Source: Macrostomum lignano (lineage: Eukaryota). From it: DNA of 64,000 nt. How positions within the stretch are numbered: the first letter of the stretch is position 1; the number at the start of each line of letters is the position of its first letter. The translations under genes were made by a program, and so were the position numbers. The stretch covers positions 248,001-312,000 of the forward strand of contig NIVC01000946.1 in the NCBI GenBank assembly GCA_002269645.1, read 5' to 3'. Under the pieces are notes generated by a model. That model was not told the origin of the DNA and did no database searches. It worked only from the letters and a program-made list of their open reading frames with translations. Of this stretch, positions 1 through 55,518 are shown one piece after another.

Positions 1-3000
1 GATCTGTTAGTAAAATTAGAGCTGGAGTTGAATTGCACAAAGACAGACGTTATCTCAGGTATCTGGTGGATTGACACCTATCCGGAGCTGAGGCCCCTCG
101 GACTGGCCCTGCCAGATTCTGTGGAGATGCGCCTGCAAAAGCGCAGTCTGCCTTATGGCCTGTACAGAGTCAGTCTCAACCTGAGCATGGTCGCTGTGCA
201 ACCCGCCGTATCCGTGCAGCGTCAATTCTTTCTACGCATCGTTCCAACGCCAGTTCAGGTGGAACAGATTGGCGCACCAGCTCAAGTTGAATACGACCAG
301 TTGGTGACGCTGACAGCGTCGCAGTATACCCACGATTACGACGTTGAGCCTGGCAACCTGACCGGCTTTCATTTTGTTTGGATGTGCCTGCAGCTGAGCG
401 AGAACTCCAGCGCACCGTTTAATTTGACTAACTTTGTGTCGCCTCCTGCTAGCCAGGGTGTCAATAATTATAGAGGCTGCTATGGCAACGGATACGGTAT
501 AGTGCTACAAGGTGACAGTGAGACAGCTGGAAATCTCACACTGAGTACCTACCACACCATGCCAAATGCAACATACCTGTTTAGACTGTTTGTTTATAAA
601 GGATCGCGTTGGGACCTCAAAGAGATGGTTCTGTACGTTCGAACTCAGAAGGCTCCCGTGTTTGATATTAGGTAAAGGCATTTTTCGTTCTTTTCAAGCA
701 TTTTTTAAATTGCATTTGACATTAAACTAACCATAAACCATGCCAAATGGCTCTCTCTAGTTGCGTTTCCAACTGCAACAGAAAGATCAGCTCAGAAGTT
801 GATCTAGTCTACCAAGTTGATTGTCGACAATATTGCGGGCAAAAGTTCCAACCGCTGCAGTACTTGTGGCAGATGTACCAAGCAAATGTATCGGTACTTC
901 GCATGGATGATCTGTCAGTCGTCAGCGGGAGCGGTAAGCTGGAGCACTTTCCCGGCACCTATCTGACTTTTTTCTGATTCTAAACACTCAAACGTAAGCC
1001 CAGATGCCCATAATATCCACCACTTTAGAAGGCTTCAGATCCGCCAGCTTCACTCGCAGAGCCAATACTCTGCCAAAGGCGAGCTACTATATTCTGAAGG
1101 TGACGTGCAGCAACTTCAGGCAGGAGGGTCCGGTTACACGTGAGCAAAGACTAATCGTGAACAGCCCGCCCTACGGAGGCAAGTGCGATGTAGCGCCACG
1201 CAACGGCACTGCCATGTCAACGAAGTTCCAAATAAGCTGCTGGGACTGGAAGGAGTTCGACATCGAGCTGGGCGGGATTCGCTACGAGTTTAAAATCCGC
1301 GAGCCTGGCAGCCGGCGAAAAATCCCGCTATTCTTTGGCAAAGTCTCCACTTCGCCGCGCATATTTTTCCCGCTAGGCAGCCCCAGCGCCAACTTACCGC
1401 TCTTGTGTCTGCGCTACTCATTGACTCGCTGGGTGACTCACAGAAATACGAGTTTCCTGTCACGGTACGTCTTAGAAGAATTTCAGAGAGTTTCAGTTTC
1501 CTTGCCACCCGCTGTACACAGACTGTTGCACCCTTTCTAGGTTTTACCCCCGCCAGTTTCTGTGGAAGTTCTCTCTGACAACATCTCTGACATTCTGACT
1601 GGCAGAAGCGAAGAGCTCACGAAATATTTCCAACTTAACGACCAACAAGGAGCCGCGTCGACAATGCTGTGCCTGGTGTCGCTAATGAACGTTGATTCCA
1701 AATACTTTCTAGGCGAGAATGCCACGGCCGAGGATGCCCAGTCAGCGATCAAGCGTATGACAGAAGTAAGACATACGAGTAGAAAGTATTGATCCTTTAA
1801 CAGGTTTTTCCCTAGCTGAATCTGTGCGCCAGTCTGTCCCTAGTCTGTGCCCTAGACGGCTGGCAGAGCGTCTTGCATGCTGCATGCAGATTAGCACAAA
1901 AAATAACTCAGCAATGTCAAAGTTCGGGCGAGAACGGCATGTACTTAGGAAGATACTCTAGGCATCTTAGCTTTCATAGGATGCGCGCACATTTGTAACA
2001 AATTTTCAATACTCAGTGACCTAAAACGTGGTGGATAATTCAACGGCATCAAGTAAGGCATCAACGAAGATGGACTAGTCTTGATCGAGGGAAAAATGAA
2101 AATTCGGGACCAGAAACACGATGAAGAAAGATTTCTATTTTTTTAAATTTAGCTTCAAAGGTGTGGGATGCAAAGTCAGCCAGTGCCACTGACCGGGTCG
2201 GCCTTCATAGGTCAGCTATTAGTCGAAATATTCGAGCGTAGAAAATAAATTTACTGAACGAATTCTATAGGTCATGACAGTTCCGTGGAATATTTCAATG
2301 AAAAAAGAAAAAAATTGTTTTAGTTGCGGTCCACTTTCGTCAGCATATTGTCGAATTTCACAGTTGAAAACGATACAAACAGCTTGGAGCAGACAACTGA
2401 GCTAATGAGGACTTCAGTGCTGAGACCGGATCAGCTGGAGTTAAATGCTCAGGTGAGTTGATTGTTAAAAGATTGAGCTGACTATTAAAAGTGGCACTGT
2501 AATGTCAAAAGTCTAATATATTTTCAGGAAACTGCTGGTGACAATTACGTATACATGACAGAGAACCTTGTGATGTTGAAAAATCAACTGTCAGACAATG
2601 ATCTTTCCTTGCTTGGACAAGGTAAAATCGATGCATTTATTATATTTATTCGCTCACCTTTCATACAGTCATATTGCTGCACAATTTCAGATTTTGTCTA
2701 CACTGGGTCAAATATTTGGAAGGCGGCAAACTTAACAGCCCAAGAAGAGAATTCTAGGCTGCCCTGCCAATCAGAAAATGGGTCGCTGAGTAGCGAGTGC
2801 TCAATAAATTCTGCTCTGAATGGTTCCTATCAACTGTCTGCGGCTCAACAGACTCTTAAGAAGCTGATGGACAAGGTTTTGAACAATATCAATGAAACTA
2901 CGGACCTACTGCTTGAGCGCATGGGAAACTACAGCATAGCTGACAGCGAAGTGCACGCCGTAGGCACCCAGAAACCCCTAACAGGTGGAGAGGTCCTACA

Positions 3001-6000
3001 GTCGAGCTTCGGTTCAATCACGCTAGACGCCAACACCACCATCCGTTGGTGCCGAACAAAGACTGTCTTCAGCCGCATGAACCCGTACGCCTGGTCGGCA
3101 ACAGCCGGCCAAGTGAAATCCAGCGTCCTACAGTTGCACGCCAGTGAGTGCAAGTCGACGGCGCGACGTAGAAGGCGTGCCGCTCCTGAGCAGCAGTACT
3201 TCACCGTGCAGCTGGACGCCGCTGCACCTCAGTATGTGTCGGTGAATGCTACGCCAGTTAACCGCTGGTTAATATTCTCGCACAGCTTCAATGTAACAAG
3301 TGCTGAAGTTTTGATTCAAATTGTAATTGAGCCAGTCATTCCTGATCACAAGTTCGACGTCTATCTGCAGTCTGGAGTCGAAGCGACGCCGGAAGGCTTT
3401 TTACTGCATTTTGTTCTGTCTGGCAATGACTCGGTATTCACGTTGCCAAGAGGCTTTCTGAATGATACGGAAACAAACTATGTGTCTGTGCGCAGATTCA
3501 ACTGCCTCCGAGGATCCTGCGCTGAGCCTGAATTGGCATATCGCTACGCCATTGTTCAGCACGCCTGTCAGCTGTGGGACGCCTCTGCTAGCGCCTGGCG
3601 GGCACCAACGACCGAAGCCAGCTGTCTGGCAAGTTCCGAAGGCAGCCAGCCGGACCAGCCAGTCTTCCGCACCAATCTGCTTGGTGGCATCGGAGCCGGC
3701 ATCCAGCTGACGCCGAACCTCATTGACTTTGGCCGACTGTTTGAGAATTGGCAGGGCAAACTAGCAGATAGTGCGGCTGTGGTAGCTACCGTGGCAGTGC
3801 TCTGGTGCCTGTTCATCCCTCTGGCTGCGATTCTTCGTCACGTCGACGGTAGAGACAAAGCAACTGTAAGTACTTTGTAATTTATTGTGAAGTTTATCAT
3901 TTACTGACTGTCTTTTTACAGTGGTGGGCTAATAAATAACAAAGTGCCTATGATTTCTAGATCCGTGTTCTGTTAAAATCTAATTATGACAGCAGCTTTT
4001 CTACTAAGGCTATTCAATTCCTTTTTAGTTCGCATATCTGCCGCTGGCTGATGACAAGCAGAAGACATTCGAGTACAAACTTGACGTGTACACCGGAGCT
4101 GATAAAGACAGCGGTACGGATGCGGCAATTCATTTCTCACTGACGGGAACAAATGGAATGGTTGCTAACAGGATCTTGCATGACAACTGCCGCGTTGTAA
4201 GTCGCCTTTTCAATAAATTCTTATTAAGTCTGGTAGAAGCACTATTTCTAAAATCGAGACATTGCATCTTAAACAAAACACTTCAGAACTTTCGACCCAA
4301 AGCTATCGATCACTTTACCATGACAACGGAGGTTAATTTGGGCGACTTGAGGCAGCTAACAATTTGGATCAGCAGCACCAGCCAGTTGGACTCTTGGCTC
4401 ATGTCAAGAATAGTTATCACTGACTGTCAGAAAAATACTCGGTAAGAAAAACCTAGTTGATAAGTTTTAGTATATGGGATAGGTTGAGTTTAATGCCCTA
4501 TGATGCTCATTTTCCCTACCAACACAGGTATTTTTTCATTCTAAACGACTGGGTGAAGCCACACAGCGACCAACTGGTTCATCTCGCCACCAGGGAGAAT
4601 TTGTCGTATTGCCCTGGCCTGTTGCGCAACAATCTGAGCCGAAAGCTGACCGACGATCACATCTGGATGTCGGTGCTGCGCCGCAAGACTGACACCAATT
4701 TCTCGAGAATTGAACGTCTGGGCGTCTGTTTCAGCGTGCTGTTCCTCACAATGATCGCCAACGCGATGTGGTACGGCGTTGGGGACGGCGGCTCAAACGC
4801 CCAACAGATGGTCCACATCGGGCCAGTGAAGTTCTCCGTGAACGCTCTGCTAACATCCATACTTGGTGCCTTGTGCGTTGTTCCAGTCTCCGCTCTGATC
4901 GCCTTACTCTTCATGAAGTCCGCGCCTTGGCGTCGGAAAGAGGTCGCGAAAGTCTCAGCCAGTGATTTTTCTTCAAGAACGATCCATCGATACTCCACTG
5001 TATCAGCAAAGACCACACAGCAGTCGGTCAGCAACAAATCGAAGCAAATTGTCCTACCGTTCTGGTGCAACATAGTTGCCTGGTTCCTAGTGCTGGCCAG
5101 TGTACTAGTTTCTGGCCTATTCTTAGTGTTCTACGCCATGGACTGGGGCCGAGACAAGTCTCAAGAGTGGCTGGCGGCTTTCTTTCTGTCAACGTTTCAG
5201 TCTGTACTTATCATTCAACCACTAAAGGTAGGCATGCGATTGACATACTCGTATTTGTCTATGTTTAGGCATGACTCATGTCCACTCACCGATGCCTCGT
5301 GTCCACTCAGCGATGCCTTGTGTCCACTCACGATGCCTCGTGTCCACTCAGCGATGCCTTGTGTCCACTCACCGATGCCTCCTGTTCACTCACCGATGCC
5401 TCGTGTCAACTCAACGATCCCTCGGGTCCGCTCACCGATGCCTCCTGTCCACTGTCTGACGTCTTACTATCCACCTACCGATGCAAAAAACAAAGGGAAT
5501 ACTTAATATTTCGATTGCTACACAGTATCTAAACATGTTTGTAGTCAAAACTGAATATGTTTGCTTCCTAGTCCTACGACAAGCAGGTGTTGATTTAAAA
5601 GTGTTATCATCTGTTATAGTTTTTCGATTCGTATCATTAACTAGTGCTGCATACTCACACGAGAAACCTAATATAGTTTATTAAAGTATTCCAAAAGCAT
5701 GTGCCCTTCTTATTTACATTATCCAGGTACTCGCTATTGGGCTGGTGATTTCAGTAATAATGCGCAAGGACTACGACGCGATGAAGATGGACTTGGTGCG
5801 AGTAAGGTACCATAGCAACGCTAGAAAGAGAGGTATTGCCTTCAGTGATTCGCTTGATTTCTGGTTATTGTAAAGATTTTAACACAGTTCACTTTGCTTA
5901 ACTGTTTCAGAGGTCTTCAAATACCTGCATGAACTCGAGGAAGAAGAAAAGAACGACGAACTGCTGAAAAAAGCCAGGAAGACTACGGTGGACCTGATAT

Positions 6001-7613
6001 TGAGCCTTATCCTGCTGGTCCTCCTGTACTGCATCTGCTACGGAAACTTGGATCCTGTCACCTACAATCTGCATAAAAGCATTAAAATACATCTCGGAGT
6101 GGACAAACTGAGCATGGTCAGCACGTTTGATAAGTACTACGAGTACCTGCGGACAACACTCATAACGGCACTGTACTCCAGCGACCTACCCCAGTTGGTA
6201 AATAATCTTAGTCAGTCGCAAGAATCGAGTTTCATCAGTGACCTCGCCGGTTATCGCTTAAGTCGCGTCACTGTGCGCCAGCTGCGCATCCGGCCAGTGG
6301 ACGTGCACCGTCTGGCACCCCCTGGCGGTGTCCATTTCAGCGAGGAAGTTCGCGACACCGGCTGTTACAGGCCCGGATGGCGAGAGCTGCGAGTCTGCAA
6401 CTACTCAGAGACTCAGTCAGCTTTGGAGCTGGCATTCGTGGACTTGCCAGCAAAGCTTACCGACAGTATCGACTATTGGGGCCGCTTGAAGTTATACAGC
6501 GGCGGCGGATTCACCGCTGTGCTACCGAACGGAGCCAATCGAACAATGGAGCTTCTGACTGAGTTGCAGCGATTTAATTGGCTGGATAACTACACCAGAC
6601 TGGCGATTGTTGAGATGGACCTGTTCTATCCCAGTGTAAATTTGTTCACCAGCGTACTTCTCAGTCTGGAACTGCAACCTTTCGGCGGCAGCTTAAGCAA
6701 CAGTGAGCTGTACAGTACCCGCTTGTACCGTTACATTGGAGCCGCTGGACTGTTCGCCCTGGTCTCGGAGATCCTCACCGCCCTGCTGTGTCTGATTATG
6801 ATTTCTCGCGTTGTGCTGAGCATCAAGGAGCAAGGCCGTGCGTACTTCAGCAGCGCCTGGGCCTGGCTTGGCCTAGCCATGCACGCCTGTCTCGTATCGT
6901 GCGCCGTTTGCTACGGTTTGCGAACGGGCGCCACAATTGCCTCGCTAAACCAGCTGCGCAACGCTAAACTTCTGTCTACTAATCTGCGATATGTCATGTT
7001 GGTCAATCAGCAGTTTTTCTACTTCCTAGGTGCAGCCACCTTCCTACTGCAGGTGTCATTTATTAATATTGTTAGGTTCAGTCGAGGGCTACACCATTTG
7101 CAAGGCACAGTAAAGAAGTCGCTCGCCGAGCTGACGTCATTCATTCCGGTCTTTTTGATTGTGTTTTTTGCATTCACTCTGCTGCATCATCTGCTGCTTG
7201 GATGCCTTGAAGAGCCCTATAGGTCTGTGCTGGACTCGATTATAACAAACTTCTCAGCCATGCTGGGAAAATTTGACATGCAGTACGTGAGTCGCAACGG
7301 CCTGCTAGCAAAGTTGGCATTCCTGCTCTATGTCTCCTTCATCATGTACATCGTGTTGAATGCCTTCATTGCTATTATCAACGAATCATACGAGACGGTG
7401 CGCGAAGAGGCCGAGACAAGCCCCAGCGAGGAGGACTTCCAGTTGCTGGACCAGATTCTGGCCAACTTGCGCAGCCTGATGACCTGGAAAAGGAGTAGAG
7501 GAGAGGAGTACCTGGAAAAGGAGGAGTACGAAGGTGAGAAAGTTGCCTGGGCTATAAAAATATCGGTCAAATTTAGTGCTCATATGCATGCAGGATGGGA
7601 TATCGAACATTAA
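1..7613 (+). CDS. Polycystin-1-like (PKD1L/REJ-type) multi-exon gene, 5' part outside window: REJ - GAIN/GPS - TM1 - PLAT/LH2 - TMs - polycystin cation-channel domain
   Basis: Consecutive ORFs join through GT-AG introns read by eye (672-760, 934-1028, ~1464-1540, 2622-2690, and introns starting ~3867 and ~5228). Motifs: REJ-type 'ISCVSNC', 'VNSPPYGGKCDVAPRNGTAMSTKFQISCWDW'; 'PNLIDF' before TM1; PLAT 'YKLDVYTGADKDSGTDAAIHFSLTG'; 'DDHIWMSV...FSRIERLGVCFSVLFLTMIANAMWY'; TOP/channel 'YSGGGF', 'WLDNYTRLAIVE', 'YIVLNAFIAIINESY'. One apparent 1-nt deletion near 1395. Exons between ~1770 and ~2320 were not resolved. Confidence 0.92.
5279..5480. repeat. Intronic 21-bp minisatellite (TGTCCACTCACCGATGCCTCG), ~9 copies
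   Basis: TCCACTCA recurs at 5281, 5302, 5323...; the array lies inside the PKD1L intron that starts ~5228. Confidence 0.9.
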
Positions 7614-14501: not shown

Positions 14502-16365
14502 ATGGTAGGCTACTCATGCTCAGTCTGCCGGGACGCTGTCCCCTGCTCAGCCAGCAGCTGCTGTGCATTGCCATGCGGCCACGTGTTCCACCAGGCCTGC
14601 GCAGACACCTGGCTGGCCACATCGCGCTGTTGTCCGCTGTGCCGGGTGCGGGTGCCGCCAAAACCCGGCCCGCTCAAGCTGTTCTTCTCCAGCGAGGACT
14701 CCACTATGGACTGCAGCGTTGTTGACGCCGGCGGCGACTCGGCGTCCACGGCTGCTGACCTTCGAGTCCGAGTTGACGAGCTGTCCAGCTTGCTTCGCGG
14801 CGAGCAGGAGGCGCGCGAGTCTGCCGAGCTGCGATTGGCTGCGGCAGAAGCCGACCTTGCGGAGGCTGGCCGGCAGAAACTGCGCATGCAGAAGAGTCTG
14901 GATGTGGCCAGCCTGCAGGTGTCCCAGCTGCAGTCCTGCGCCAGTCAGCTGGAGGACGCATCCAGGTGGGTAGCGAGAGCTCATTCTGTAGATAGTTGAG
15001 TCGGAGCACACTCAGTGCAGTCAGCACATACTCAGCACACACTCAGTACACTCAGCACACACTCAGTACACTCAGCACACTCAGTACAGTCAGCACACAC
15101 TCAGTGTAGTCAGCACACTCAGTACAGTCAGCACACTCAGTGTACAGTCAGCACACTCAGTGTAGTCAGCACACTCAGTACAGTCAGCACACACTCAGTG
15201 CAGTCAGCACACTCAGTGCAGTCAGCACACTCAGTGCAGTCAGCACACACTCAGTACAGTCGAAACGGATTGAATTGGTAAAATCTCACTGAGAAGACCT
15301 TGAACTCATCGCCATATATAAAAATTCTTTAGAGAGGCCGACCGTTGGCGCAAGGAGGCCCGCGAGTACCGGGAGTCGCTCACCCTGTACGAGCACCTAC
15401 GCGCAGTTGTCGAAGGCGACGCGGCCGAGGCGGAGCGCCAGCTGGCGGAGTGCGGCAGCGCGGGAGCTACTCAAGCCTCGGTGCGCGAGCTCATGACTAT
15501 CGGTATGCAGCTTCGCCGGCATCTGGACAGGGCTAGGCGAGAGAAGCGGGACCTGCTGACTAGGGCCAACCACGCCGAGGTCAGGCTTCGGCGGGCCAAG
15601 GAGCGCCTGACGGCCATGCAGCAGCAGCAGCAGCTTGGAGCGACTGGCACGCCTTCCAATCAACGACGCGGACCCTCCGCCAGCGTCGGCTGCCAGACTG
15701 ACGGTGGCTCCGTTGTTGAATGCCTTCAGGAGTCACCGGCCGCCGCCTGTCCTCGCTCCCCGGTGTTCCGCGGCAGCTCGGCTCGGCAGCAGCGACGACA
15801 ACCGCAGCCGGTGAACGACTCAATGGCTGTGGTTGTCTTGGACGACGACGAGGACGAAGAGATCGATGGAAATGACGACGGCGTGTCGCCTCTGACCGGC
15901 CTCGCCTCCTGGCGCCCGACGCCGTCGTCTGTTGAATCGCCGATGCTTCGGACGCCGTTAAATCCATTTCGACGTGCGCACAGCGCCACCTCTGTTGTGG
16001 TGCTGTCTCAGCAGCGGCCTCAACAGCAGCAATCGCAGCCGCAGTTCTTGCCGCCGCAGCCTCCGTCACGTCCACCGCCTCCGAAGGCGGTCATCGGGCC
16101 GACCAATGCAGACCGGGTGGCCATCCGTCAGCCGCTCTCCTGGCCAGCCGGTCATCCTCCGCTGCGCCTCAGTCGCCGATACGACCGAAAATTCGCTCGG
16201 TTCTGTCTAGGAGAAATCCTGCCGGAGGCGGGTCAGTTCGACTGCCAAAGAAGATTGCGTCCAGTCGAGGAGTGGGGAGTCGCGGTGCAGCCAGCGGCGG
16301 CGGAATCGCGAAGTACTTTTATTCTAAGCCGAGTGACTGCGGAGGCGGTAGTGCCCAGTAGCTAA
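14502..16365 (+). CDS. TRAIP: TRAIP-like RING-H2 E3 ubiquitin ligase (exon 1 14502-14965; exon 2 15333-16365)
   Basis: N-terminal RING 'CSVC...CGHVFHQAC...W....RCCPLCR' followed by 'KLFF', as in TRAIP, then coiled coil and a low-complexity tail. The donor CAG|GTGGGT at 14965 and acceptor CTTTAG|AG at 15332 join in frame (R-E-A-D-R-W-R-K). Orthology is inferred from architecture and not confirmed by search. Confidence 0.7.
15005..15260. repeat. Intronic ~18-20-bp minisatellite (CACACTCAGTACAGTCAG)
   Basis: Repeated ACTCAGT(A/G)CAGTCAGCAC units fill most of the TRAIP-like intron. Confidence 0.9.
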
Positions 16366-16434
16366 TAGCTTGGTAGTTATTGATTGTGACTTGAGTAGAG
16401 CTGCGGGTTTGGTGATTTATTGTAGAATATCGAT

Positions 16435-17538
16435 AGAGAGGCCGACCGTTGGCGCAAGGAGGCCCGCGAGTGCCGGGAGTCGCTCACCCTGTACGAGCAC
16501 CTACGCGCAGTTGTCGAAGGCGACGCGGCCGAGGCGGAGCGCCAGCTGGCGGAGTGCGGCAGCGCGGGAGCTACTCAAGCCTCGGTGCGCGAGCTCATGA
16601 CTATCGGTATGCAGCTTCGCCGGCATCTGGACAGGGCTAGGCGAGAGAAGCGGGACCTGCTGACTAGGGCCAACCACGCCGAGGTCAGGCTTCGGCGGGC
16701 CAAGGAGCGCCTGACGGCCATGCAGCAGCAGCAGCAGCTTGGAGCGACTGGCACGCCTTCCAATCAACGACGCGGACCCTCCGCCAGCGTCGGCTGCCAG
16801 ACTGACGGTGGCTCCGTTGTTGAATGCCTTCAGGAGTCACCGGCCGCCGCCTGTCCTCGCTCCCCGGTGTTCCGCGGCAGCTCGGCTCGGCAGCAGCGAC
16901 GACAACCGCAGCCGGTGAACGACTCAATGGCTGTGGTTGTCTTGGACGACGACGAGGACGAAGAGATCGATGGAAATGACGACGGCGTGTCGCCTCTGAC
17001 CGGCCTCGCCTCCTGGCGCCCGACGCCGTCGTCTGTTGAATCGCCGATGCTTCGGACGCCGTTAAATCCATTTCGACGTGCGCACAGCGCCACCTCTGTT
17101 GTGGTGCTGTCTCAGCAGCGGCCTCAACAGCAGCAATCGCAGCCGCAGTTCTTGCCGCCGCAGCCTCCGTCACGTCCACCGCCTCCGAAGGCGGTCATCG
17201 GGCCGACCAATGCAGACCGGGTGGCCATCCCGTCAGCCGCTCTCCTGGCCAGCCGGTCATCCTCCGCTGCGCCTCAGTCGCCGATACGACCGAAAATTCG
17301 CTCGGTTCTGTCTAGGAGAAATCCTGCCGGAGGCGGGTCAGTTCGACTGCCAAAGAAGATTGCGTCCAGTCGAGGAGTGGGGAGTCGCGGTGCAGCCAGC
17401 GGCGGCGGAATCGCGAAGTACTTTTATTCTAAGCGAGTGACTGCGGAGGCGGTAGTGCCCAGTAGCTAATAGCTTGGTAGTTATTGATTGTGACTTGAGT
17501 AGAGCTGCGGGTTTGGTGACTTATTGGTAGAATATCGA
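16435..17538 (+). repeat. Second copy of a 1104-bp tandem duplication of the TRAIP-like terminal exon (ORF to 17469)
   Basis: Identical ORFs offset by 1104 nt (15345 vs 16449; 15481 vs 16585). The junction ATCGAT|AGAGAGGCC falls at the splice-acceptor AG. Confidence 0.9.
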
Positions 17539-17770
17539 TTTTGTGTCAAAATTATTGAATCGTATCTTGCGCTTTCTAGTCAGCTAATTAAACTGAGTTT
17601 ATAGGTAGGGGTATAGCTAGCAGGATATAGTGTAATAAATATGATATATCACCGTGGGTCTAGATTCCAGTATCTGCCATTAGTCGGGTTACTTAGTTTC
17701 AATAGATCTGGTATTTATTTAATAGTATCGAAGTATCTATCAACAGTTACGAATGTAATATCTAGCTCGT

Positions 17771-18776
17771 AGTTACTAGTATCGATGGGTCTAGTTACTA
17801 GTATCGATTGATCTAGTTACTAGTATCGATGGGTCTAGTTACTAGTATCGATTGATCTAGTTACTAGTATCGATAGGTCTAGTTACTAGTATCGATTGAT
17901 CTAGTTACTAGTATCGATGGGTCTAGTTACTAGTATCGATTGATCTAGTTACTAGTATCGATGGGTCTAGTTACTAGTATCGATTGATCTAGTTACTAGT
18001 ATCGATAGGTCTAGTTACTAGTATCGATTGATCTAGTTACTAGTATCGATGGGTCTAGTTACTAGTATCGATTGATCTAGTTACTAGTATCGATAGGTCT
18101 AGTTACTAGTATCGATTGATCTAGTTACTAGTATCGATGGGTCTAGTTACTAGTATCGATTGATCTAGTTACTAGTATCGATTGATCTAGTTACTAGTAT
18201 CGATGGGTCTAGTTACTAGTATCGATTGATCTAGTTACTAGTATCGATAGGTCTAGTTACTAGTATCGATTGATCTAGTTACTAGTATCGATGGGTCTAG
18301 TTACTAGTATCGATTGATCTAGTTACTAGTATCGATAGGTCTAGTTACTAGTATCGATTGATCTAGTTACTAGTATCGATGGATCTAGTTACTAGTATCT
18401 ATGAGGTCTAGTTACTAGTATCGATGGTCCAGTTACTAGTATCTATGATATCTAGTTACTAGTATCAATGGATCTAGTTACTATTATCTATGAGATCTAG
18501 TTACTAGTATCTATGAGATCTAGTTACTAGTATCTATGAGATCTAGTTACCTAGTATCGATGGGTCTAGTTGCTAGTGTCGGTTGGTCTAGTTGCTAGTG
18601 TCGGTTGGTCTAGTTACTAGTTTCGGTTGGTCTAGTTACTAGTTTCGGTTGGTCTAGTTACCTAGTTTCGGTTGGTCTAGTTACTAGTTTCGGTTGGTCT
18701 AGTTACTAGTTTCGGTTGGTCTAGTTACCTAGTTTCGGTTGGTCTAGTTACCTAGTTTCAGTTGGTCTAGTTACTA
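17771..18776. repeat. 22-bp quasi-palindromic minisatellite (CTAGTTACTAGTATCGATNNNN), ~45 copies
   Basis: CTAGTTACTAG at 17791, 17813, 17835...; TTGA and GGGT/AGGT spacer variants alternate. Confidence 0.95.
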
Positions 18777-19254
18777 GCACATGTTAGCTTATTAAATGAT
18801 TTAAAACGTTCACCACATCTAATTAACTGCAGCAGTATTTTAGACAAAGCTTAGTTGTTAATAGCGGCTCAAAATCTTTTATCAATCCGCAAATGAAAAA
18901 CTGCATTATATATTTTTTATTTATTCTTTGGCTGTGTGCCAATGATACTTTTCGATGACCATGCTAGGACTTAAGCTCTTTATATAAACATTTTATAGTC
19001 TCTATTATTATTAAATTAACGATTTTCATTGTAATTGCTCAGCATTTGTAGCTAAGTGTTGGAGGGCGTTTTCATGCTTTATTTTTCTGTATTCGCTCTT
19101 GTCCTGCATTTTTTAATCAAATACACCCCACTGAGGTGCTGCAATTTCTATTCCCTACACAATTTTCACCGAACTGTCTAAAACCGAAGGAAATATGAGC
19201 GGTCTCATTTTTTATGATCTGCACACGCGTCTCTTGAACCGCCCTCTCAGATTC

Positions 19255-20306
19255 CCTCTAGCTGGGTCACCGCCACCCTCCCAGATCCTCTGACTGGGTC
19301 ACCGCCACTCTCCCAGATCCTCAGACTGGGTCACCGCCACTCTCCCAGATCCTCAGACTGGGTCACCGCCACTCTCCCAGATCCTCAGACTGGGTCACCG
19401 CCACTCTCCCAGATCCTCAGACTAGGTCACTGCCACTCTCCCAGATCCTCAGGCTGGTCACCGCCACCCTCCCACATCCTCAGGCTGGGTCACCGTCACC
19501 TTTCAAGATCCTCAGACTGGGTCACCGCCACCCTCCCACATCCTCTGACTGGGTCACCGCCACTCTCCCAGATCCTCAGACTGGGTCACCGTCACCTTTC
19601 AAGATCCTCAGACTGGGTCACCGCCACCCTCCCACATCCTCAGGCTGGGTCACCGCCACCCTCCCAGATCCTCAGGCTGGGTCACCGTCACCTTTCAAGA
19701 TCCTCAGACTGGGTCACCGCCACCCTCCCACATCCTCAGGCTGGGTCACCGTCACCTTTCAAGATCCTCGGGCTGGGTCACCGCCACCTTCCCAGATCCT
19801 CAGGCTGGGTCACCGCCACCCTCCCACATCCTCAGGCTGGGTCACCGCCACCCTCCCAGATCCTCAGACTGGGTCACCGTCACCTTTCAAGATCCTCAGA
19901 CTGGGTCACCGCCACCCTCCCACATCCTCTGACTGGGTCACCGCCACTCTCCCAGATCCTCAGACTGGGTCACCGTCACCTTTCAAGATCCTCAGACTGG
20001 GTCACCGCCACCCTCCCACATCCTCAGGCTGGGTCACCGCCACCCTCCCAGATCCTCAGGCTGGGTCACCGTCACCTTTCAAGATCCTCGGGCTGGGTCA
20101 CCGCCACCTTCCCAGATCCTCAGGCTGGGTCACCGCCACCCTCCCACATCCTCAGGCTGGGTCACCGCCACCCTCCCACATCCTCAGGCTGGGTCACCGT
20201 CACCTTTCAAGATCCTCAGACTGGGTCACCGCCACCCTCCACATCCTCAGGCTGGGTCACCGTCACCTTTCAAGATCCTCAGGGCTGGGTCACCGCCACC
20301 CTCCCC
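19255..20306. repeat. 32-bp minisatellite (GACTGGGTCACCGCCACCCTCCCAGATCCTCA), ~33 copies
   Basis: GGGTCACCG recurs every ~32 nt. Confidence 0.95.
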
Positions 20307-20631
20307 AAGATATTAATTGATGCACCAAAAGTCAATAAATTTACTTCAATGCTTCGCTAAGTGAGCATGGCATGTTGCTGCCCTTCCTAGAGTGCGCATT
20401 AATAATAGCGTTTTCACAGATACAACTCAGCTTGCGAAAGTGCTGCTATAAGGATCCTCTTTGTAACTCTACAGGCCACACAAGTAAACATATACAAAAA
20501 AGTTTCTACAATCAAATGAAAGATGAGATCTTCTGCTTTCCAATGACTCGAAAATTGTTGAAGTTCAAGCATGCATTAATAATCCATAGGCAAAAGTATC
20601 ACTATAATTTTTGGACACCCCCTCGCAATTA

Positions 20632-20943
20632 CTAGCTTAAGATTGAGCCTAATCCATACAAAACCCCACAGTTTGCACTCGCAGTAGTGCTTCTGCACTT
20701 GCCGTGCTTGATGACCCGGCCGACCTTGACTTTGCAGCACTTGATGCAGATGAATGTCATGCTGACGACACTGAAGGTGCGCTTGCAGCAGCCGGCCGCG
20801 CCGCAGCTCTTCGAGACGCCGCGGTCCTCAATGGCGGTGCTCTCGTCGGCGGAGTTCTCAACCGGGCTGGCCGCGGCCGGCCCGCTTGAGAACAGCAGGC
20901 AGAGGCTGAAGGCCGCCATTATGAGTAGCAGATTAACACGCAT
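20632..20943 (-). CDS. Small secreted cysteine-rich peptide precursor (103 aa; signal + acidic propeptide + 8-Cys mature domain)
   Basis: Hydrophobic N-terminus MRVNLLLIMAAFSLCLLFSSGPAAA, acidic segment SPVENSADESTAIEDR, then C-x4-CC-x12-C-x2-CC-x12-C-x8-C. GC-rich island in AT-rich flanks; single coding exon. Confidence 0.8.
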   Translation of the reverse strand: MRVNLLLIMAAFSLCLLFSSGPAAASPVENSADESTAIEDRGVSKSCGAAGCCKRTFSVVSMTFICIKCCKVKVGRVIKHGKCRSTTASANCGVLYGLGSILS

Positions 20944-21854
20944 CTTCTCTTCAGACTAATAAATGGCCTCGTATGGCTATTGATGAGATGAGTTCGAATT
21001 TGCAGGTCGCTTCTTTGGATGCCCCCCAGTTGTAGGGTTCGGTTGTTGCTTTTATTCGTATGGCAATTTCGCGCTTGGCTCCAGCCCCCACCCCTTTAGG
21101 CAGCTAGTTTTAATTGGATTGAGCTGCAGCTTGGGTAGCTCCGAGCGATACTATAGCTAGGATAGGGATAGGAATCTTGAGCTGGCCTGCTCGTGCACGT
21201 GTCCGCTGTTCTCGTGTGCGCCGCTGGGGGTCGGTGCGACTGTAAGATCTCTCTCTACCTCTCTCTGTATTCACTGGTCTCTATTGTCTTCCTTAAGTGT
21301 CGTCTAAGGGGGTTGCATTAGCTTTATAAAACTGCCTCATAAACAGTCACTGCAAAACTACCGTGGCTTATGCTTGAGAAAAGCTAGTTGGAGAGAATGG
21401 AGATCGAGGAGCTAGGGGGCAGCTCGCACGTGTTCCAGCTATACACAGTGGCAATAGACCAGTATCAACTCTCGTAGCTATAATAGAGCAGCTCGACTGC
21501 CGATCGCGACTATATAGTTCACAGTACGTGAGCTCGCGCGAGCAAAACACACAGTCAGTATAGTAATTTCTGTCGGGTGGCCTGACAGCACAGCGCTTGC
21601 TGTACATGTACAGTGTACACTATCACAGCATGAAATCAACTATCGATTAAAAGCTTGCATTGATCCAATAACTTAAACTGGAGCATGAGCAGCGGGTATT
21701 ATATTGAGTACAGCAGTGAGCTGATCGATAAATAGCTGCATGTATATACACTCAGCATGACTAGGTACCCCGCGAGCCACACACTCATGCTGTCACGCGG
21801 CACAGGCACAAAGCATGTTAAATTGCTGACTCCATCAGGGCAACGCAACGCAAC

Positions 21855-22537
21855 GCAATTTTAGCAACGCATTGACTCATTTTAGCGACGCATTGACTCA
21901 TTTTAGCAACGCATTGACTCATTTTAGCAACGCATTGACTCATTTTAGCGACGCACTGACTCATTTTAGCAACGCATTGACTCATTTTAGCAACGCATTG
22001 ACTCATTTTAGCGACGAATTGACTCATTTTTGCGACGCATTGACTCATTTTAGCGACGCATTGACTCATTTAAGCGATGCATTGACTCATTTTAGCGATG
22101 CATTGACTCATTTTAGCGATGCATTGACTCATTTTAGCGATGCATTGACTCATTTTAGCGATGCATTGACTCATTTTAGCGACGCATTGACTCATTTTAG
22201 CGATGCATTGACTCATTTTAGCGATGCATTGACTCATTTTAGCGATGCATTGACTCATTTTAGCGACGCATTGACTCATTTTAGCGATGCATTGACTCAT
22301 TTAAGCGATGCATTGACTCATTTTAGCGATGCATTGACTCATTTTAGCGATGCATTGACTCATTTTAGCGATGCATTGACTCATTTTAGCGATGCATTGA
22401 CTCATTTTAGCGATGCATTGACTCATTTTAGCGATGCATTGACTCATTTTAGCGATGCATTGACTCATTTTAGCGATGCATTGACTCATTTTAGCGATGC
22501 ATTGACTCATTTTAGCGATGCATTGACTCCTTTTAGC
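21855..22537. repeat. 21-bp minisatellite (GCATTGACTCATTTTAGCGAT), 31 TGACTCA-containing units plus one variant
   Basis: ATTGACTCA at 21871, 21892...; the translated ORF shows 31 seven-codon units before a degenerate last unit. Confidence 0.95.
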
Positions 22538-22645
22538 GCCACAGGCACTTACGAGCGTATTATGGCGCCGATATGCGAATTTTAGCGCCAGAAAAAAATT
22601 TTGATTTCCATAACGGGCCACAAGGTGCGGAGGGGGACAAACCTT

Positions 22646-23817: not shown

Positions 23818-26800
23818 CTAAGCCTGCGCCTGCGCTACCTGCTTGTCAGCTTTGGACTGCACCGGCAGGTACAGCTTGAACTCTGCGGGCAGCTCGTCTT
23901 CGGTGTACAGCCGGTCGGAGAAGTACACCCGGCGGATGCGGCAGTTGGCATGGATCTGCGGGAGTTGAATCATTGCTAATCCAATTATTTGTTCTTTGAT
24001 GTTTACCGCTCTCACACACTTCTGATCTATCTGTGATCTTTGATGTTTACCGCTCTCACACACTTCTGATCTATCTGTGGTCTTTGATGTTTACCGCTCC
24101 CGCACACTTTTTATCTATATGTGGTCTTTGATGTTTACCGCTCCCGCACACTTCTTATCTATCTGTGGTCTTTGATGTTTACCGCTCTCACAACATACTT
24201 CTTATCTATCTGTGGTCTTTGATCTTCACCGCTCCCGCACACTCCTTATCTATCTGTGGTCTTTGATGTTCACCGCACCCGCACACTCCTTATCTATCTG
24301 TGGCCTTTGATGTTCACCGCTCCCGCACACTTCTTATCTACGAGTATCTGTGATCTTTGATGTTCACCGCTCCCGCACACTCCTTATCTATCAGTGGTCG
24401 TTGATGTTCACCGCTCCCGCACACTCCTTATCTATCTGTAGTCTTTGATGTTCACCGCTCCCGCACACTCCTTATCTATCTGTGGTCTTTGATGTTCACC
24501 GCTCCCGCACACTTCTGATCTATCTGTGGTCTTTGATGTTCACCGCTCCCGCACACTTCTGATCTATCTGTGGTCTTTGATGTTTACCGCTCCCGCACAC
24601 TTCTGATCTATCTGCCTGGTCTTTGATGTTCACCGCTCTCACACCTCTTATCTATCTGCCGTATCTGCTCTTTTTTAATTTGACTTGCCAATCCTAACAA
24701 AAATTGCCTTATCCTCCTGATTGCACCAACCTGAACGCGCAGAGTCTCAATGTAGTTAGTGCCATAGGCTCGCCTAGTGAAGTCGGACAAGTTGAACTGG
24801 ATCTGGTTCCAGCCCTCGTCCAGGCGCATCGGCATGGTGCAGATAAACGGTTTCACCCGGGTGGTGCTCTGATAGTTGGAGGCGCGGAATCTGCGCCGAA
24901 CATGCTTGTCGTCCAAAATCTAAAGATTTTGAAGTTTTGTTTAAATTTTTAAATTTCTTGGAAAACTAATATATTGGAGTTGCTAGAAAAAATTAACAAT
25001 GAATTTATTTTTACCTGAATTTCAAAAGTAAAGTACTTTTTCAAGTTTTTGATGATCATGACCAAGAAAGGCAATTTGATGCCAAGGTCCTTATCTTTAT
25101 CTTTTGGACAGGTGATAAAAGTTGTACTGACATTGGTGCCAACAATTTCTAGGACAAGTGATTGGATGTCATTGTCAGTGATGCGTTTTATGTGACCATT
25201 GCGTACCTACAATTAAGAAAGTATTTTATTATTGTTTCTATGTAAATTAACAGTAAATTTTTGGGTACAGGGCTGATAGAATGTTTAAATAAGCATAAAA
25301 ATAAAACAAGAAAATAATGAAATAACTTTTGATATATAAAGTATAATATTAAATTGCTTAGGATGAATTATACTTAAGGCTGGCTATTGTTTAAAGATAC
25401 AACAAAAATTAATAATAATAGAACTTCTGTTAAGATAAAATAAGCTTAATATTTCAAATAAGTTTTTATTAGACCTACTCAAGTATTTATACACACTAAC
25501 AATGGCAAATTTAATCAACAATCTATAATACATGATTAGATAAATCCAAAAATACATTTTAAAATACATTTCGAAAAATAAAACAGCTAAACTTATATTA
25601 TTTTAAATAAAGCAATAAGTATTTTGCTTGGGGGGCATCACAAACCCAAAAAAGCACAACTCCAAAAGTGTTTTTTATCATAAACCCAAAATATTATAAA
25701 CTTGAAATTAATAGCAAAGCCTATCATAAACACAGAAAATCATAAACCCAAAATTTCATAACTCCAAAAACAAAAAACCATTGCCTATCATAAACCCAAA
25801 ATAAATCAAACCTAAAATTTTAAATATCATAACTCAGAAAGTTCTAGCAAAAGCTATCCAATAATATTTTTTTTGGAGTTATGATATGATATAGCCTAAA
25901 TTTTTGTTCTCTAATATTAGAAGTATTAGACTTATTAAAAATTAATTCCTACTACACCATTTTACCCTCAATTTTGAACAAGGAGAACTTCAAAACTGAC
26001 AAACTCCTCTTCAATATTGACACTCTATGGTCGGGCACTCAAAATCTACAATCAATATTGACAGATCAAGCTTCAATTTTGACAAACTCTGGTTAAATTT
26101 TGACAATGCATGTTTAGTCAATTTCTCCTGGGAGAATTCAGTAACAAATTAATCCAATGAAAGCCTGAATGGGGCTGAAGTGAGCTGTGCAAAATCAGCT
26201 TGCTTTTTGGATCTACAAGTATTGATAAAATTTATTTTTCTCCATCCTTTAGACATACAGACTAAAATAGCCTGACTGGTTGGGCTGCAAAGTCCGATTC
26301 TATTTTGACAGAGTTGCTTCAAAACTGACACTCTATGGTTTGTGTACCCAAAAAGTCCGCTTCATTTTTGACAACTCCGAATCAATATTGAACAGTTTAC
26401 AATCAATTTTGGCTAAGACATTTTTAAAAATAGATTTTGACCATTTTTACTAAGATTTCTCTCTTGAGGGGGGTACTTGCTATTTGGGAGAGGGGGTACT
26501 GGCTGCATGTATCTATGAGTACATGTATGGGAATCTTTCTATCCAGGGATGCTTTGCTATCTGGGGGATGCTTGGTATCTACAGGATGCTTGCTATCTGG
26601 GTGGATGCTTGCTATCTGCAGGATACTTGCTATCTGGGTGGATGCTTGCTATCTGGGTATATGCTGGCTATCTGGGTGGATGCTTGCTATCTGGGTGGAT
26701 GCTTGCTATCTGGGTGGATGCTTGCTATCTGGGTGTATGCTGGCTATCTGGGTGTATGGTGGCTATCTGGGTGTATGCTTGCTGTCTTGGGATGTTAAAT

Positions 26801-38944: not shown

Positions 38945-40017
38945 ATTGATAATGACAGCGCCATTTGTTAATGACAGCGTCGTTGATAATGACAGCGCCA
39001 TTTGTTAATGACAGCGTCGTTGATAATGACAGCGCCATTTGTTAATGACAGCACAATTGATAATGACAGCACCATTTGTTAATGACAGCACAATTGATAA
39101 TGACAGCACAATTGATAATGACAGCGCCATTGATAATGACAGCGTCATTTGTTAATGACAGCACAATTGATAATGACAGCATCATTGATAATGACAGCAT
39201 TATTGATAATGACAGCACCATTGATAATGACAGCGTCATTTGTTAATGACAGCACAATTGATAATGACAGCATCATTGATAATGACAGCATCATTGATAA
39301 TGACAGCATCATTGATAATGACAGCATCATTGATAATGACAGCATCATTGATAATGACAGCATCATTGATAATGACAGCGTCATTTGTTAATGACAGCGC
39401 CACTGATAATGACAGCGCCACTGATAATGACAGCATCATTGATAATGACAGCATCATTGATAATGACAGCATCATTTGTTAATGACAGCACAATTGATAA
39501 TGACAGCATCATTGATAATGACAGCATTATTGATAATGACAGCATCATTGATAATGACAGCATCATTGATAATGACAGCATCATTGATAATGACAGCATC
39601 ATTGATAATGACAGCATCATTGATAATGACAGCATCATTGATAATGACAGCATCATTGATAATGACAGCATCATTGATAATGACAGCGTCATTTGTTAAT
39701 GACAGCGCCACTGATAATGACAGCATCATTGATAATGACAGCATCATTGATAATGACAGCATCATTGATAATGACAGCGCCACTGATAATGACAGCATCA
39801 TTGATAATGACAGCATCATTGATAATGACAGCATCATTGATAATGACAGCATCATTGATAATGACAGCATCATTGATAATGACAGCATCATTGATAATGA
39901 CAGCATCATTGATAATGACAGCATCATTGATAATGACAGCATCATTGATAATGGCAGCATCATTGATAATGACAGCATCATTGATAATGACAGCATCATT
40001 GATAATGGCAGAACAAT
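38945..40017. repeat. 18-bp minisatellite (GATAATGACAGCATCATT), ~1.07 kb
   Basis: A regular 18-nt unit produces the DNDSII/MTASLI/MMLSLS repeat ORFs on both strands. Confidence 0.95.
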
Positions 40018-45229: not shown

Positions 45230-47626
45230 ATGCCATCCCTGCACCAGATAGACTCCGGAAACGGCGCCAACGGTTCGAAGCATCGGGTGCACGACGACGG
45301 CGGCGCGGCAGCGACTTCCGCGTCCGGCAGCGGCAGCACTGAGGAGCCATCCGGCGACTCCGAGGCCTGCCTGCCGCGGATGAAGCTCGCCACCAACGGC
45401 GCTGGAGTTGGCAACGGCAACGACGACGGTGTAACAACCCGGAGAAGCCGGTGCAGCGCCCGGACCTGCATCCTGACGGCGGCGGTGATCATTCTGGCGG
45501 GTGGCCTGGCCGCCCTCTGCGTCCTGTACTTCGTGGTTGGACCTGCGCGCGGCTTCAGCTTCGGCTTTGGCGGCGCTGGCGATGGCGGCGCCAAGGGAGG
45601 CGCCGCGGCCAGCAGCCAAATCGGAGCCGAGGGCTGCGCCGTGGTTGTCGCCGCTGCCGGCGCGATGTCGGGCCCGGAGATGGCGGCCGTCACGGCCTTC
45701 ATGCGGCCCGGCGAGTCACCCTGCCGCAGCTTCTACCGGCACGCCTGCGGCGGATTTGCCGACGGTGCCGCCGGCGGTGTCGCCCTGCCCTGGACTGGAG
45801 ACCGGGTCCGGCGCCAGGTTGGCTTCATCGACTTGGCCGGCCGGCGCATCCGGGAATCGCTGCTGGAGTCGCTGCTGCTACCAAAAGAGCTGCTGACCGG
45901 TCCCGGCGCCGCCAGCTGGAAGTCCGCGGTCGGCAATCTGACTTTGGCCTGCTCGCGCCAGCTGGCGCCGCTGACAGCCGAGGAGCTGCGCGCCGTTTTC
46001 GCTGACCGGCGCCGATTCGCCCAGACCGCCCTGCTGGCCAGCCGCTCCGCCGCCTGGGGTGTCGCCGACTCGCCGGAGAAGGTGCTCGCCCAGTTCGCCT
46101 CGCACGGCCTGCCCGTAGCCTTCGAAGTCTCTCCGCAGGTGGCGCAGCCGGCGCCCGTGACGGCCGGCCACCTGCCGCTGTGCTTGCGGCCGGTTCGCCC
46201 CGCCCTGCCGCCGATGCCGCGCGACCGGATGCACCGCCTGATCGCCGCCGCTTTCGAAGCGATGGGCCGCGGCGTGCCGTTTCTCATCGCCGGGAAGATC
46301 CTGGCGCTGCACAACGGCCTGCAAGAGATCCTTCGAAGCGCTGATGTGGCCGACGCCAGCTCAGCGCAGTTCGAGATGCGGCCAATTGCAGCTCTGCACG
46401 CCCTGTTTCCTAATGGCCGTTTCGGCTGGGAGGCCTTCCTGGCCGAGCTGCTGGCCGGCGGCGCCGAAGGCGGCCCGACAGCTTCGAATGTGGCCGGCTA
46501 CTCCTCGGCCTGTCTCAGCGGGGAGCGGACAGTGACGGAGGCGGTCAGGCTGGCGGCCAGCCAGGACCCGGACACCCTCATTGGCTACGCGCTGATCAAC
46601 GCTCTGGCCGGGCTGCGGCCCCACCTCGGACACCTGCTGCCGCCGAAGCTGCTGCAACTTCTGACCGTCGCCACCACATCCGAAGACGTCGCACTCGACA
46701 AGCTGTCGAAACCATCGCAAGTTCCCGACGTCTGCTTGGACACCGCGCTAGCGCTGTTTCCACGAGTTGTGCACCGCGTCCTGGCCGACAAGCACCCGCT
46801 GGGCTCGGCCGAGGGCCTCACGCGCCGAGTGCGGGCCGCCTTGGTTGGCCTCGGGGTCAAGAGCGACGTTGAGGACCTGGCGCTGGACCCATACCTGACC
46901 GGTGGCGGTGCCAGCGCCTACAGTGACGCCGCACTGTCGGCTCTGCACAGCGACCTGAGCCTGCCGGAACCGGAAGAGGGCTACCCAGCCGCTCTGCTGT
47001 CGGCCATGCGCCACGCCTTTCTGGCGCCGCTGCGGGCCGCCCTGCGCGGTCACTCGATAGCGCCGCTTCCATCGTCCAGCGAGCCACTGCTCCTGGCGCG
47101 CGACCTGTCGCCGACGGCTTCCAAGACGCCGGTTTTCGACAGCCGCCTGCCGCTGCATTTCTATCTGGCCGCGCTGGACGGCGCCCAGTTCTCCCTGCTG
47201 CTGGCGCGTCAGCTGATGCCGCCGAGGCCGCGCCCGCCGAAGCCGGAGCTGCTAGCTCTGCACGGCTGCCCGGGCGTCGACTCTGCGATTGCTGCCCGTC
47301 TGGCGACGCTGCGGGTCAGCTTCAAGGCGGCTCTGACCGCTGCGACGGCGTCGTCTGCGTCATCGGAGTCGAGTGCGGCTGACTGGCGCAGAGGATTCTA
47401 CCTGCGCGCCGGGCAGCTGCTCTGCCAGCGGTTCGCTTCGCCCGCCGACGCCGACGGAGCTGCTGCCGCGGTCGACTGGGCCATCGGTGGCCTGCCGGAT
47501 TTCCGGCGCGTCTTCCAGTGCGGCCTGGAGGCTGAGCCGGCGGCCGGAGAGGCGGTGGACCGTCGGAGGGGCTGCCCGAGAGTCCCTGATGGCGGCTCTT
47601 GGGCCGTTGGTGCAACTGCCGCCTGA
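45230..47626 (+). CDS. Intronless neprilysin/ECE (peptidase M13)-like type II membrane protein, 798 aa, predicted catalytically inactive
   Basis: Single TM 'CILTAAVIILAGGLAALCVLYFVVG'. M13 N-terminal signature 'ESPCRSFYRHACGGF' (cf. PCxDFYxxACGxW). C-terminal 'FYLRAGQLLC...VDWAIGGLPDFRRVFQC' (cf. FFxxxAQxWC...RVxxxxxNxxxFxxAFxC). No HExxH was found. Confidence 0.8.
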   Translation: MPSLHQIDSGNGANGSKHRVHDDGGAAATSASGSGSTEEPSGDSEACLPRMKLATNGAGVGNGNDDGVTTRRSRCSARTCILTAAVIILAGGLAALCVLYFVVGPARGFSFGFGGAGDGGAKGGAAASSQIGAEGCAVVVAAAGAMSGPEMAAVTAFMRPGESPCRSFYRHACGGFADGAAGGVALPWTGDRVRRQVGFIDLAGRRIRESLLESLLLPKELLTGPGAASWKSAVGNLTLACSRQLAPLTAEELRAVFADRRRFAQTALLASRSAAWGVADSPEKVLAQFASHGLPVAFEVSPQVAQPAPVTAGHLPLCLRPVRPALPPMPRDRMHRLIAAAFEAMGRGVPFLIAGKILALHNGLQEILRSADVADASSAQFEMRPIAALHALFPNGRFGWEAFLAELLAGGAEGGPTASNVAGYSSACLSGERTVTEAVRLAASQDPDTLIGYALINALAGLRPHLGHLLPPKLLQLLTVATTSEDVALDKLSKPSQVPDVCLDTALALFPRVVHRVLADKHPLGSAEGLTRRVRAALVGLGVKSDVEDLALDPYLTGGGASAYSDAALSALHSDLSLPEPEEGYPAALLSAMRHAFLAPLRAALRGHSIAPLPSSSEPLLLARDLSPTASKTPVFDSRLPLHFYLAALDGAQFSLLLARQLMPPRPRPPKPELLALHGCPGVDSAIAARLATLRVSFKAALTAATASSASSESSAADWRRGFYLRAGQLLCQRFASPADADGAAAAVDWAIGGLPDFRRVFQCGLEAEPAAGEAVDRRRGCPRVPDGGSWAVGATAA

Positions 47627-50245: not shown

Positions 50246-50834
50246 ATGATCGGTTCTGCACTGCTTATGTTAGTGAAATATTTTATTAGCTAAAATTAAT
50301 GTCGTATTTCTATTAAGATACTCAAGTACAGACAATTCTATGTTGATGATTTCATCTTGTCGTTTTATTACTTGAATGGCATTGATTTTTTGGAAACAGT
50401 TTTAGCTTCTAAAAAGCACCGCTTGCGAGTACGATTGATTAAAAGACGATAGTTTTGTAGACTTTGAAAGTGTCGATAATTTTACCATTTCTTTTTGTCT
50501 TTTACCTTACTAAGTTTTCCCTGCAAATGTGAAATATTGTTAGTTCTTGCAGCCGTTTATTAATATTTACATTTATAGTTCAATTTTACAAATCAAAATT
50601 GACTGCAGGGAAATTTCTGAAAGCTATTCGCTCTTATATAAGCCGTTGTCCTCATCAACCCCATGAAATTCACCTGTAACATTATGCATACGTTAATGTG
50701 TTGTTATTGAATAATAAAAATTGAAAAACGAACAATTGACTTTCGAATCGCTTTTGATTTTATTTCGAATCGAAAACTGAAATGCTGGTTTGTGTCAAAG
50801 GGACCAATGTTTGCAGGAAAAGTTATTGGTTAGT

Positions 50835-55155: not shown

Positions 55156-55518
55156 CCGCGGAAACAGCGGACAATACTCAACAGGCAAAACTGAAAAAAA
55201 ACTTTTTTAATCAAAAATATTTGCTTCAACAAATTATAAACAATTTGATACTCAAATTCCTTGGTTGAATAATTCATAGAATCGTTCTCAGTCTGATTGC
55301 TACTAAAATACAGCTGTCTTAATCCACAATGCACAACAAATTCACCTCGTCAAAGACATCGTACGAAGTGATAGAATTGTTAAGCACGGAGTTAATTAGT
55401 CACTGAAACAATTTTTCCACATGTTGCTTTCAGTGTAACGCTTTCGCGATTCCGTTTGTATTGGTACAGTTAAACATCGAACTTCAGTGTTTAAAAGTTC
55501 AGGTAAGTCTTCGTTTGT

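Follow-up and report, generated by a model that had tools for sequence, protein, structure and literature searches.

Does the short open reading frame (ORF) on the reverse strand of this DNA encode a functional secreted peptide with a new eight-cysteine framework, as the first-pass annotation had proposed, or does it have another origin? [quoted passage not shown] GenBank carries a partial coding sequence (P0001) at the same place, at L001 10001-10243, which corresponds to window 20943..20701. GC content by codon position was 0.49/0.51/0.87 over codons 1-83 of the ORF and 0.30/0.65/0.40 over codons 84-103, GC3 thus falling from 0.87 to 0.40 across the final 20 codons (RSTTASANCGVLYGLGSILS), and the lone Cys codon in this tail is TGT. 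When all 249-nt windows were scored in six frames, codons 1-83 ranked in the top 0.14% for GC3 excess; other peaks of GC3 periodicity in the window included a Pfam-supported polycystin exon and a 12-bp repeat. The collapse of GC3 after codon 83 indicates that the coding signal stops approximately 20 codons short of the end of the ORF.

The reason for this early stop was found in a second copy of the gene. P0001 shares its 90% cluster with a single further protein, P0002, which is PAA71327.1 (hypothetical protein BOX15_Mlig004404g1, UniRef A0A267FDT6), a protein of 111 aa encoded on contig NIVC01001171.1 by a single exon with its own stop codon. This intact-copy locus is referred to as L002 and has its own coordinate numbering; the gene bears the cluster name Mlig004404. 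A search for paralogues by tBLASTn, which had been suggested as a check, gave none in the window and L002 beyond the locus itself, and it was the cluster look-up that returned the syntenic PAA71327.1. Both copies are flanked by a CFA20-domain gene and a RING zinc-finger gene, and the window locus and L002 are collinear at 93-99.8% identity by blastn. Duplicates of this kind are expected, the genome of M. lignano being described as neopolyploid (PMC10733133). In the 281 nt of coding sequence common to the two copies 279 are identical, and the two substitutions (M9I and G21R) both fall in the signal peptide. High GC3 (0.86) in the intact copy runs exactly from ATG to TAA, and its codon choice is strongly biased (TGC for 13 of 13 Cys, GGC for six of six Gly, CAC for four of four His), a bias that would be compatible with high expression of the Mlig004404 gene. 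An AATAAA overlaps the TAA stop of the intact copy (L002 10332-10337); if this is the poly(A) signal in use, the 3' UTR is very short.

Identity between the window and L002 shifts sharply at the peptide gene. Comparison of window 20944-21243 and 16434-20664, each against L002, gave approximately 84-94% identity upstream and 99.4-99.8% downstream, with 99.3% in the CDS itself, and the sharp change suggests that a tract of gene conversion, or of more recent duplication, has its boundary near the gene. The two loci also differ in the neighbouring RING zinc-finger gene (window 14502-17469 (+)), which contains two 294-aa ORFs situated 1104 bp apart (15481-16365 and 16585-17469). Window 17540-16434 and window 16434-15330 each align to L002 15335-16440, indicating a tandem duplication of about 1.1 kb in the window RING gene relative to the other copy; the RING gene models are nevertheless 498 aa in both loci.

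Alignment to the intact paralogue revealed two lesions in the window copy, a one-base deletion that shifts the frame and, ten codons further on, a 352-bp deletion (Table 1). Up to the frameshift the copies agree closely: codons 42-84 of the window copy are identical to those of P0002, with a GC3 of about 0.9, and native coding sequence in the window copy is limited to codons 1-84. A second tblastn HSP of the intact protein lies at window 20701..20657, within an ORF at 20576..20740 (-). The larger deletion was defined by two blastn blocks, window 22538-20664 matching L002 8435-10281 and window 20664-20305 matching L002 10634-10994. Absent from the window is L002 10282-10633, which comprises native codons 95-111, the TAA, the AATAAA that overlaps this stop and approximately 300 bp of 3' flank. 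The absent segment continues the high-GC3, Cys-rich frame to its stop, which shows that the difference is a loss of 352 bp in the window and not a gain in L002. As a result of the two lesions translation runs into the former 3' flank, giving the 103-aa ORF and a spurious eighth Cys; the tail sequence is homologous to the L002 3' flank from 10634 onwards, and the string GKCRSTTASANCGV within it would be a peptide marker of the truncated form. No canonical poly(A) signal was found within about 290 nt of the stop of the window ORF, the nearest variant, AGTAAA, being situated approximately 290 nt downstream of the ORF.

Table 1. Positions in the window of the peptide gene copy, its lesions and its surroundings
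Feature	Position	Strand	Remarks
TATA-like element AATAAAAG	21049..21056	-	approximately 106-113 nt upstream of ATG; conserved between the copies; speculative as a promoter element
Predicted cleavable signal peptide MRVNLLLIMAAFSLCLLFSSGPAAA/S, codons 1-25	20869..20943	-	hydropathy, -3/-1 rule, AF2 helix
Acidic spacer or possible propiece SPVENSADESTAIEDR, codons 26-41	20821..20868	-	16 aa, net charge -4
Retained in-frame part of the cationic Cys-rich domain, codons 42-84	20692..20820	-	7 of 12 native Cys
GenBank partial CDS of the window copy (P0001)	20701..20943	-	81 aa, 243 nt, without stop, ends ...VIKHG
One-base deletion (frameshift) relative to the intact paralogue	20691..20693	-	paralogue alignment; directly after codon 84
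Out-of-frame remnant, native codons 85-94 (KHYCECKLWG)	20664..20691	-	readable in the +1 frame only
Junction of the 352-bp deletion	20663..20664	-	ten codons past the frameshift; blastn blocks
Read-through tail STTASANCGVLYGLGSILS (then stop) of the 103-aa ORF	20632..20691	-	frameshifted remnant plus former 3'-flanking DNA
Minisatellite arrays	17770-18777, 19261-20305, 21858-22538, 23993-24658, 38945-40011, 47700-50248, others		

The two copies are thus the same gene, sharing the signal peptide, the acidic spacer and the first seven Cys, but PAA71327.1 has 12 Cys in its secreted part and has kept its stop and AATAAA, whereas the window copy is frameshifted and truncated. Measured against the intact paralogue, the frameshift and the 352-bp deletion are disabling lesions of the kind that define a pseudogene. 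The locus that had been taken for a functional gene is a broken copy that has lost its stop and poly(A) signal, and because the eighth Cys is an artefact of read-through, the proposed 8-Cys framework is one as well, the native framework having 12 Cys. We place at about 0.8 the probability that the window ORF is a decayed member of a two-copy, syntenic, lineage-restricted gene encoding a secreted, Cys-rich cationic protein, and most likely the window copy gives no functional product. A GC-AG or GT-AG intron after codon 81-83 was also considered as the cause of the drop in GC3, and was rejected since the frameshift and deletion seen in the paralogue alignment explain the drop and the intact gene is a single exon.

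Three other readings of the window copy were weighed against that of a decayed duplicate. If the frameshift and the 352-bp gap were long-read assembly errors, or the product of a mis-join of two nearly identical duplicates, the window copy would be intact and the locus would encode 111 aa. We take the assembly to be based on PacBio reads, and the one-base difference is located in a short homopolymer run, so that this deletion could be an assembly error; minisatellites flank the region, and the 99.4-99.8% identity of its downstream part to the other locus adds to a problem-prone setting. However, a clean 352-bp deletion flanked on either side by unique sequence is atypical for long reads, the depositors annotated only an 81-aa partial CDS at the window locus, and the authors report improved base accuracy and more intact ORFs for the assembly (PMC5730564), making errors on both counts unlikely. 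Alternatively, the truncated 103-aa product may itself be a functional new 8-Cys secreted peptide, since the ORF is open with its start and signal peptide intact, the number of Cys after the signal peptide is even (8) and a gene model is present at the locus. This is very unlikely given a tail with a GC3 of 0.40 and a TGT Cys codon, where the intact copy uses TGC for 13 of 13, together with the loss of the stop-overlapping poly(A) signal, an annotated CDS that ends before the frameshift, and lesions which, with 279 of 281 nt of CDS identical, are very recent.

That the window ORF arose by chance in GC-rich sequence, with no gene behind it, is harder still to sustain. The window has many ORFs of at least 100 aa, 27 of them reaching 150 aa or more, and the antisense frame is open for 90 aa and has its wobble positions in common with the sense ORF. 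Against this, the three-base periodicity ranks within the top 0.14% of the 249-nt windows, the codon bias is extreme, the periodic signal in the intact copy is bounded exactly by ATG and TAA, the N-terminus has signal-peptide features and the gene models are transcript-derived, so that a chance frame seems extremely unlikely. The antisense ORF (20687..20959 (+)) was rejected as a real gene, as in the intact copy it has no ATG and ends within the CDS.

The GenBank gene models of this assembly rest on ORFs that TransDecoder called in a genome-guided RNA-seq transcriptome (PMC5730564). Transcription, on which the original proposal depended, is therefore in evidence for the sequence family. As the two copies are near-identical, a transcript of one can map to the other, and this evidence holds at the level of the family rather than for the window copy specifically. 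With its annotation derived from transcripts, Mlig004404 is supported as a genuine gene family.

The anatomy of the precursor was read from the intact copy. A rule-based test for a signal peptide, requiring a basic n-region, an h-region of 7-15 residues and small residues at -3/-1, found all three: R2, a 14-residue hydrophobic core from L5 to F18 (mean hydropathy 2.0-2.9), and a cleavage region with G/P at -5/-4 and A-A-A/S at 23-25/26. An AF2 model of the full precursor had a pLDDT of 51, and a helix at residues 4-19 was the sole part with pLDDT above 70. The signal-like N-terminus noted at the outset is upheld by these features, which support the prediction that the intact Mlig004404 product is secreted. 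Residues 42-111 form a 70-aa domain containing 12 Cys, 17 Lys and Arg, four His and a single acidic residue, for a net charge of about +16 and a pI of 9.67. Its Cys spacing is C-x4-CC-x12-C-x2-CC-x12-C-x4-C-x-C-x7-C-x2-C-x7-C. The domain is rich in beta-branched residues, and basic and hydrophobic residues alternate from about 70 to 100, with an amphipathic beta-like alternation around 82-100. The layout that had been described, a signal peptide followed by an acidic stretch and a strongly cationic Cys-rich domain, is thus present in the intact copy.

Two further elements of that description fared less well. The basic cleavage site proposed at the end of the acidic stretch amounts to the single R41 (...TAIEDR/G), the spacer being otherwise devoid of basic residues; no convertase site (KR/RR or RxxR) was found at the spacer junction, and positions -2, -4 and -6 hold no basic residue. 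A lone R41 fits neither the dibasic nor the furin-type RxxR rule, so that removal of a propeptide, with cleavage after R41, would be conjecture. The internal CC-x12-C repeat stands as a spacing, which does occur twice and, in a test made post hoc, did so in 1.7% of shuffles that preserved composition, but not as a sequence repeat: the two units lack significant similarity, the best internal 16-mer match being equalled by 20% of shuffles. Internal duplication of the CC-x12-C units is accordingly not supported.

Searches for homologues returned only the gene itself. A word-indexed search with the 103-aa ORF against 5.8 billion proteins found its own annotated protein only, and an exhaustive phmmer search with the intact 111-aa protein against 1.84 billion cluster representatives (E <= 0.001) found its own cluster only. 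Hmmscan of the window ORF, P0002 and the 70-aa domain against Pfam-A at E <= 10 gave 0 families, and a PDB sequence search at E <= 10 gave no match. The earlier remark that the framework was not a recognised one agrees with the Pfam, PDB and protein searches, in which no family was matched. For a 70-aa Cys-rich peptide, null searches of this kind show that close relatives are absent, while remote ones may exist, and to that extent they support the orphan status of Mlig004404. When the 70-aa domain was modelled with AF2 without an alignment, a low-confidence all-beta structure with long beta-hairpins was obtained (pLDDT 61, pTM 0.39), and Foldseek of the AF2 model against the PDB gave nothing with E <= 0.001, the best hit (E = 1.4) being noise. 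The AF2 confidence is low, and the beta-rich fold and any disulfide pairing consequently stand at the level of a model.

A classical invertebrate defensin was considered, in which the Cys-rich domain would have a CSab defensin or macin-type fold with extra disulfides. CSab defensins and macins (theromacin, neuromacin, hydramacin) are likewise small, secreted, cationic and multi-disulfide, and Mlig004404 contains a CxxxC-x10-GxC-x4-CxC string in residues 66-90 (C66IKCC70 ... G81KC83 ... C88EC90) that arose in only 1.4% of composition-preserving shuffles, in a test made post hoc. On the other hand, Mlig004404 has 12 Cys and a pair of CC doublets, unlike these proteins. Pfam, with its defensin and macin models, contains no family that it matches at E <= 10, and neither the PDB sequence search nor Foldseek gave a match, the latter none of defensin-like type. 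The low-confidence AF2 model predicts no helix in the mature domain, and the segment that would have to form one, TFSVVSMTFICIKCC, consists mostly of beta-branched and aromatic residues. A CSab fold is therefore quite unlikely.

Other secreted mini-proteins with 12 Cys include the plant snakin/GASA peptides, granulin modules and mussel mytimycin, of approximately 55-70 aa, those of the antimicrobial type being cationic. Granulin is a stack of disulfide-linked beta-hairpins, which loosely resembles the low-confidence AF2 model of the Mlig004404 domain. Mlig004404 differs from snakin/GASA, granulin and mytimycin in its Cys spacing, with two CC doublets and one C-x-C, and has no taxonomic link to them. 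Its spacing is presumably also unequal to those of the snakin/GASA, granulin, WAP, knottin and conotoxin frameworks, a comparison that serves as a lead only; for frameworks of these types no Pfam or PDB match was obtained at E <= 10.

It is possible to outline how the intact protein might act. After entry into the ER the signal peptide would be removed at AAA/S, and the 12 Cys could pair in as many as six disulfides, giving a compact mini-protein that is probably rich in beta structure, the acidic spacer perhaps neutralising the basic domain in transit. A gland or epidermal cell would then export the protein, and outside the cell the disulfide-cross-linked polycation would bind anionic surfaces. 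Taken as a whole, the explanation of a decayed duplicate together with an intact secreted polycation having an extracellular role is one that we favour, at somewhat better than even odds. As to what that role may be, we would tentatively rank antimicrobial or host defence activity first, ahead of a reproductive one, with a weight well short of even odds. The resemblance to antimicrobial peptides would be physicochemical, lying in the net charge of about +16, the 12 Cys and the amphipathic beta-like alternation. A mucus, adhesive, structural or other secreted role takes what remains after the shares of defence and reproduction. M. lignano grazes on diatoms, and a prey-capture toxin seems the least likely role.

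In the reproductive reading, which is doubtful, the intact protein would be a prostate seminal-fluid, egg or shell-gland secretion acting on the partner, sperm or egg surface. In a targeted screen in M. lignano, 76 transcripts were limited to the prostate and secretion signals were predicted for most of them (PMC5977470). Fast evolution of reproduction-related genes in the genus is reported as well (PMC7336406), and would fit the lack of homologues. The seminal-fluid candidates Mlig-pro1-76 come from the same species, and many are secreted proteins identified by expression alone. The Mlig004404 strings are absent from three supplementary files of that study, which are short and may exclude sequences. 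The absence of the protein and nucleotide strings from the PMC5977470 supplementary text, and that of Mlig004404 from the positional RNA-seq supplements, speak weakly against a reproductive role, as in both cases the text is possibly incomplete. The identifier Mlig004404 was not found in the main texts of the literature searched, nor in the supplements of PMC5816591, PMC5946080, PMC12732829, PMC7336406, PMC5730564 and PMC12896417. A literature search for an expression site, peptide or activity of Mlig004404 found none, and nothing relevant came of searching for antimicrobial peptides in Macrostomum or for disulfide-rich peptides in flatworms. A more far-reaching proposal, possible but distinctly less than probable, is that Mlig004404 founds a so far undescribed, Macrostomum-restricted family of 12-Cys, highly cationic secreted mini-proteins with a new disulfide fold and a direct antimicrobial or a partner-manipulating seminal activity; the window locus would then show birth-and-death of the family after a recent genome duplication.

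Several other features were observed in the window. Polycystin-like gene fragments are located at 28-675 (+), with a REJ domain match (E = 7e-16), and at 5988-7613 (+), with Polycystin_dom and PKD_channel matches (E about 1e-26). A 798-aa ORF at 45230-47626 (+), in a stretch of 65% GC, has a type-II-membrane-like N-terminus, the motif CRSFYRHACGGF and a sub-threshold Peptidase_M13_N match (E = 0.0012, 18.8 bits versus a cut-off of 32); Pfam gave no catalytic-domain match in this ORF, which may encode a neprilysin-like protein that is divergent or lacks catalytic activity. A possible exon is marked by strong GC3 periodicity (score 0.43) at 54845-55186, in an ORF at 54616-55155 (+). Fourteen minisatellite arrays scored highly, their periods ranging from 12 to 124 bp, including one of 2.5 kb with 112 copies of 23 bp and extreme GC and AT skew. 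Arrays lie on both sides of the peptide gene, and the length of a 32-bp array is not the same in the window as in L002.

The locus carries a caution for the reading of raw sequence, in that an ORF can pass through a frameshift into non-coding DNA and so imply a false cysteine framework. The window copy itself illustrates how duplicated genes begin to decay in a neopolyploid genome, and the object worth testing is the intact paralogue rather than this copy. Mlig004404, already deposited as a 'hypothetical protein', falls within the broad class of secreted, cationic peptides rich in disulfides, as a variant for which no match was found, and the availability of transgenesis and RNAi in M. lignano makes it directly testable. 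Should the intact paralogue prove to be an active peptide of defence or reproduction, its disulfide framework would be a new one, and would come from a phylum in which very few host-defence peptides have been characterised.
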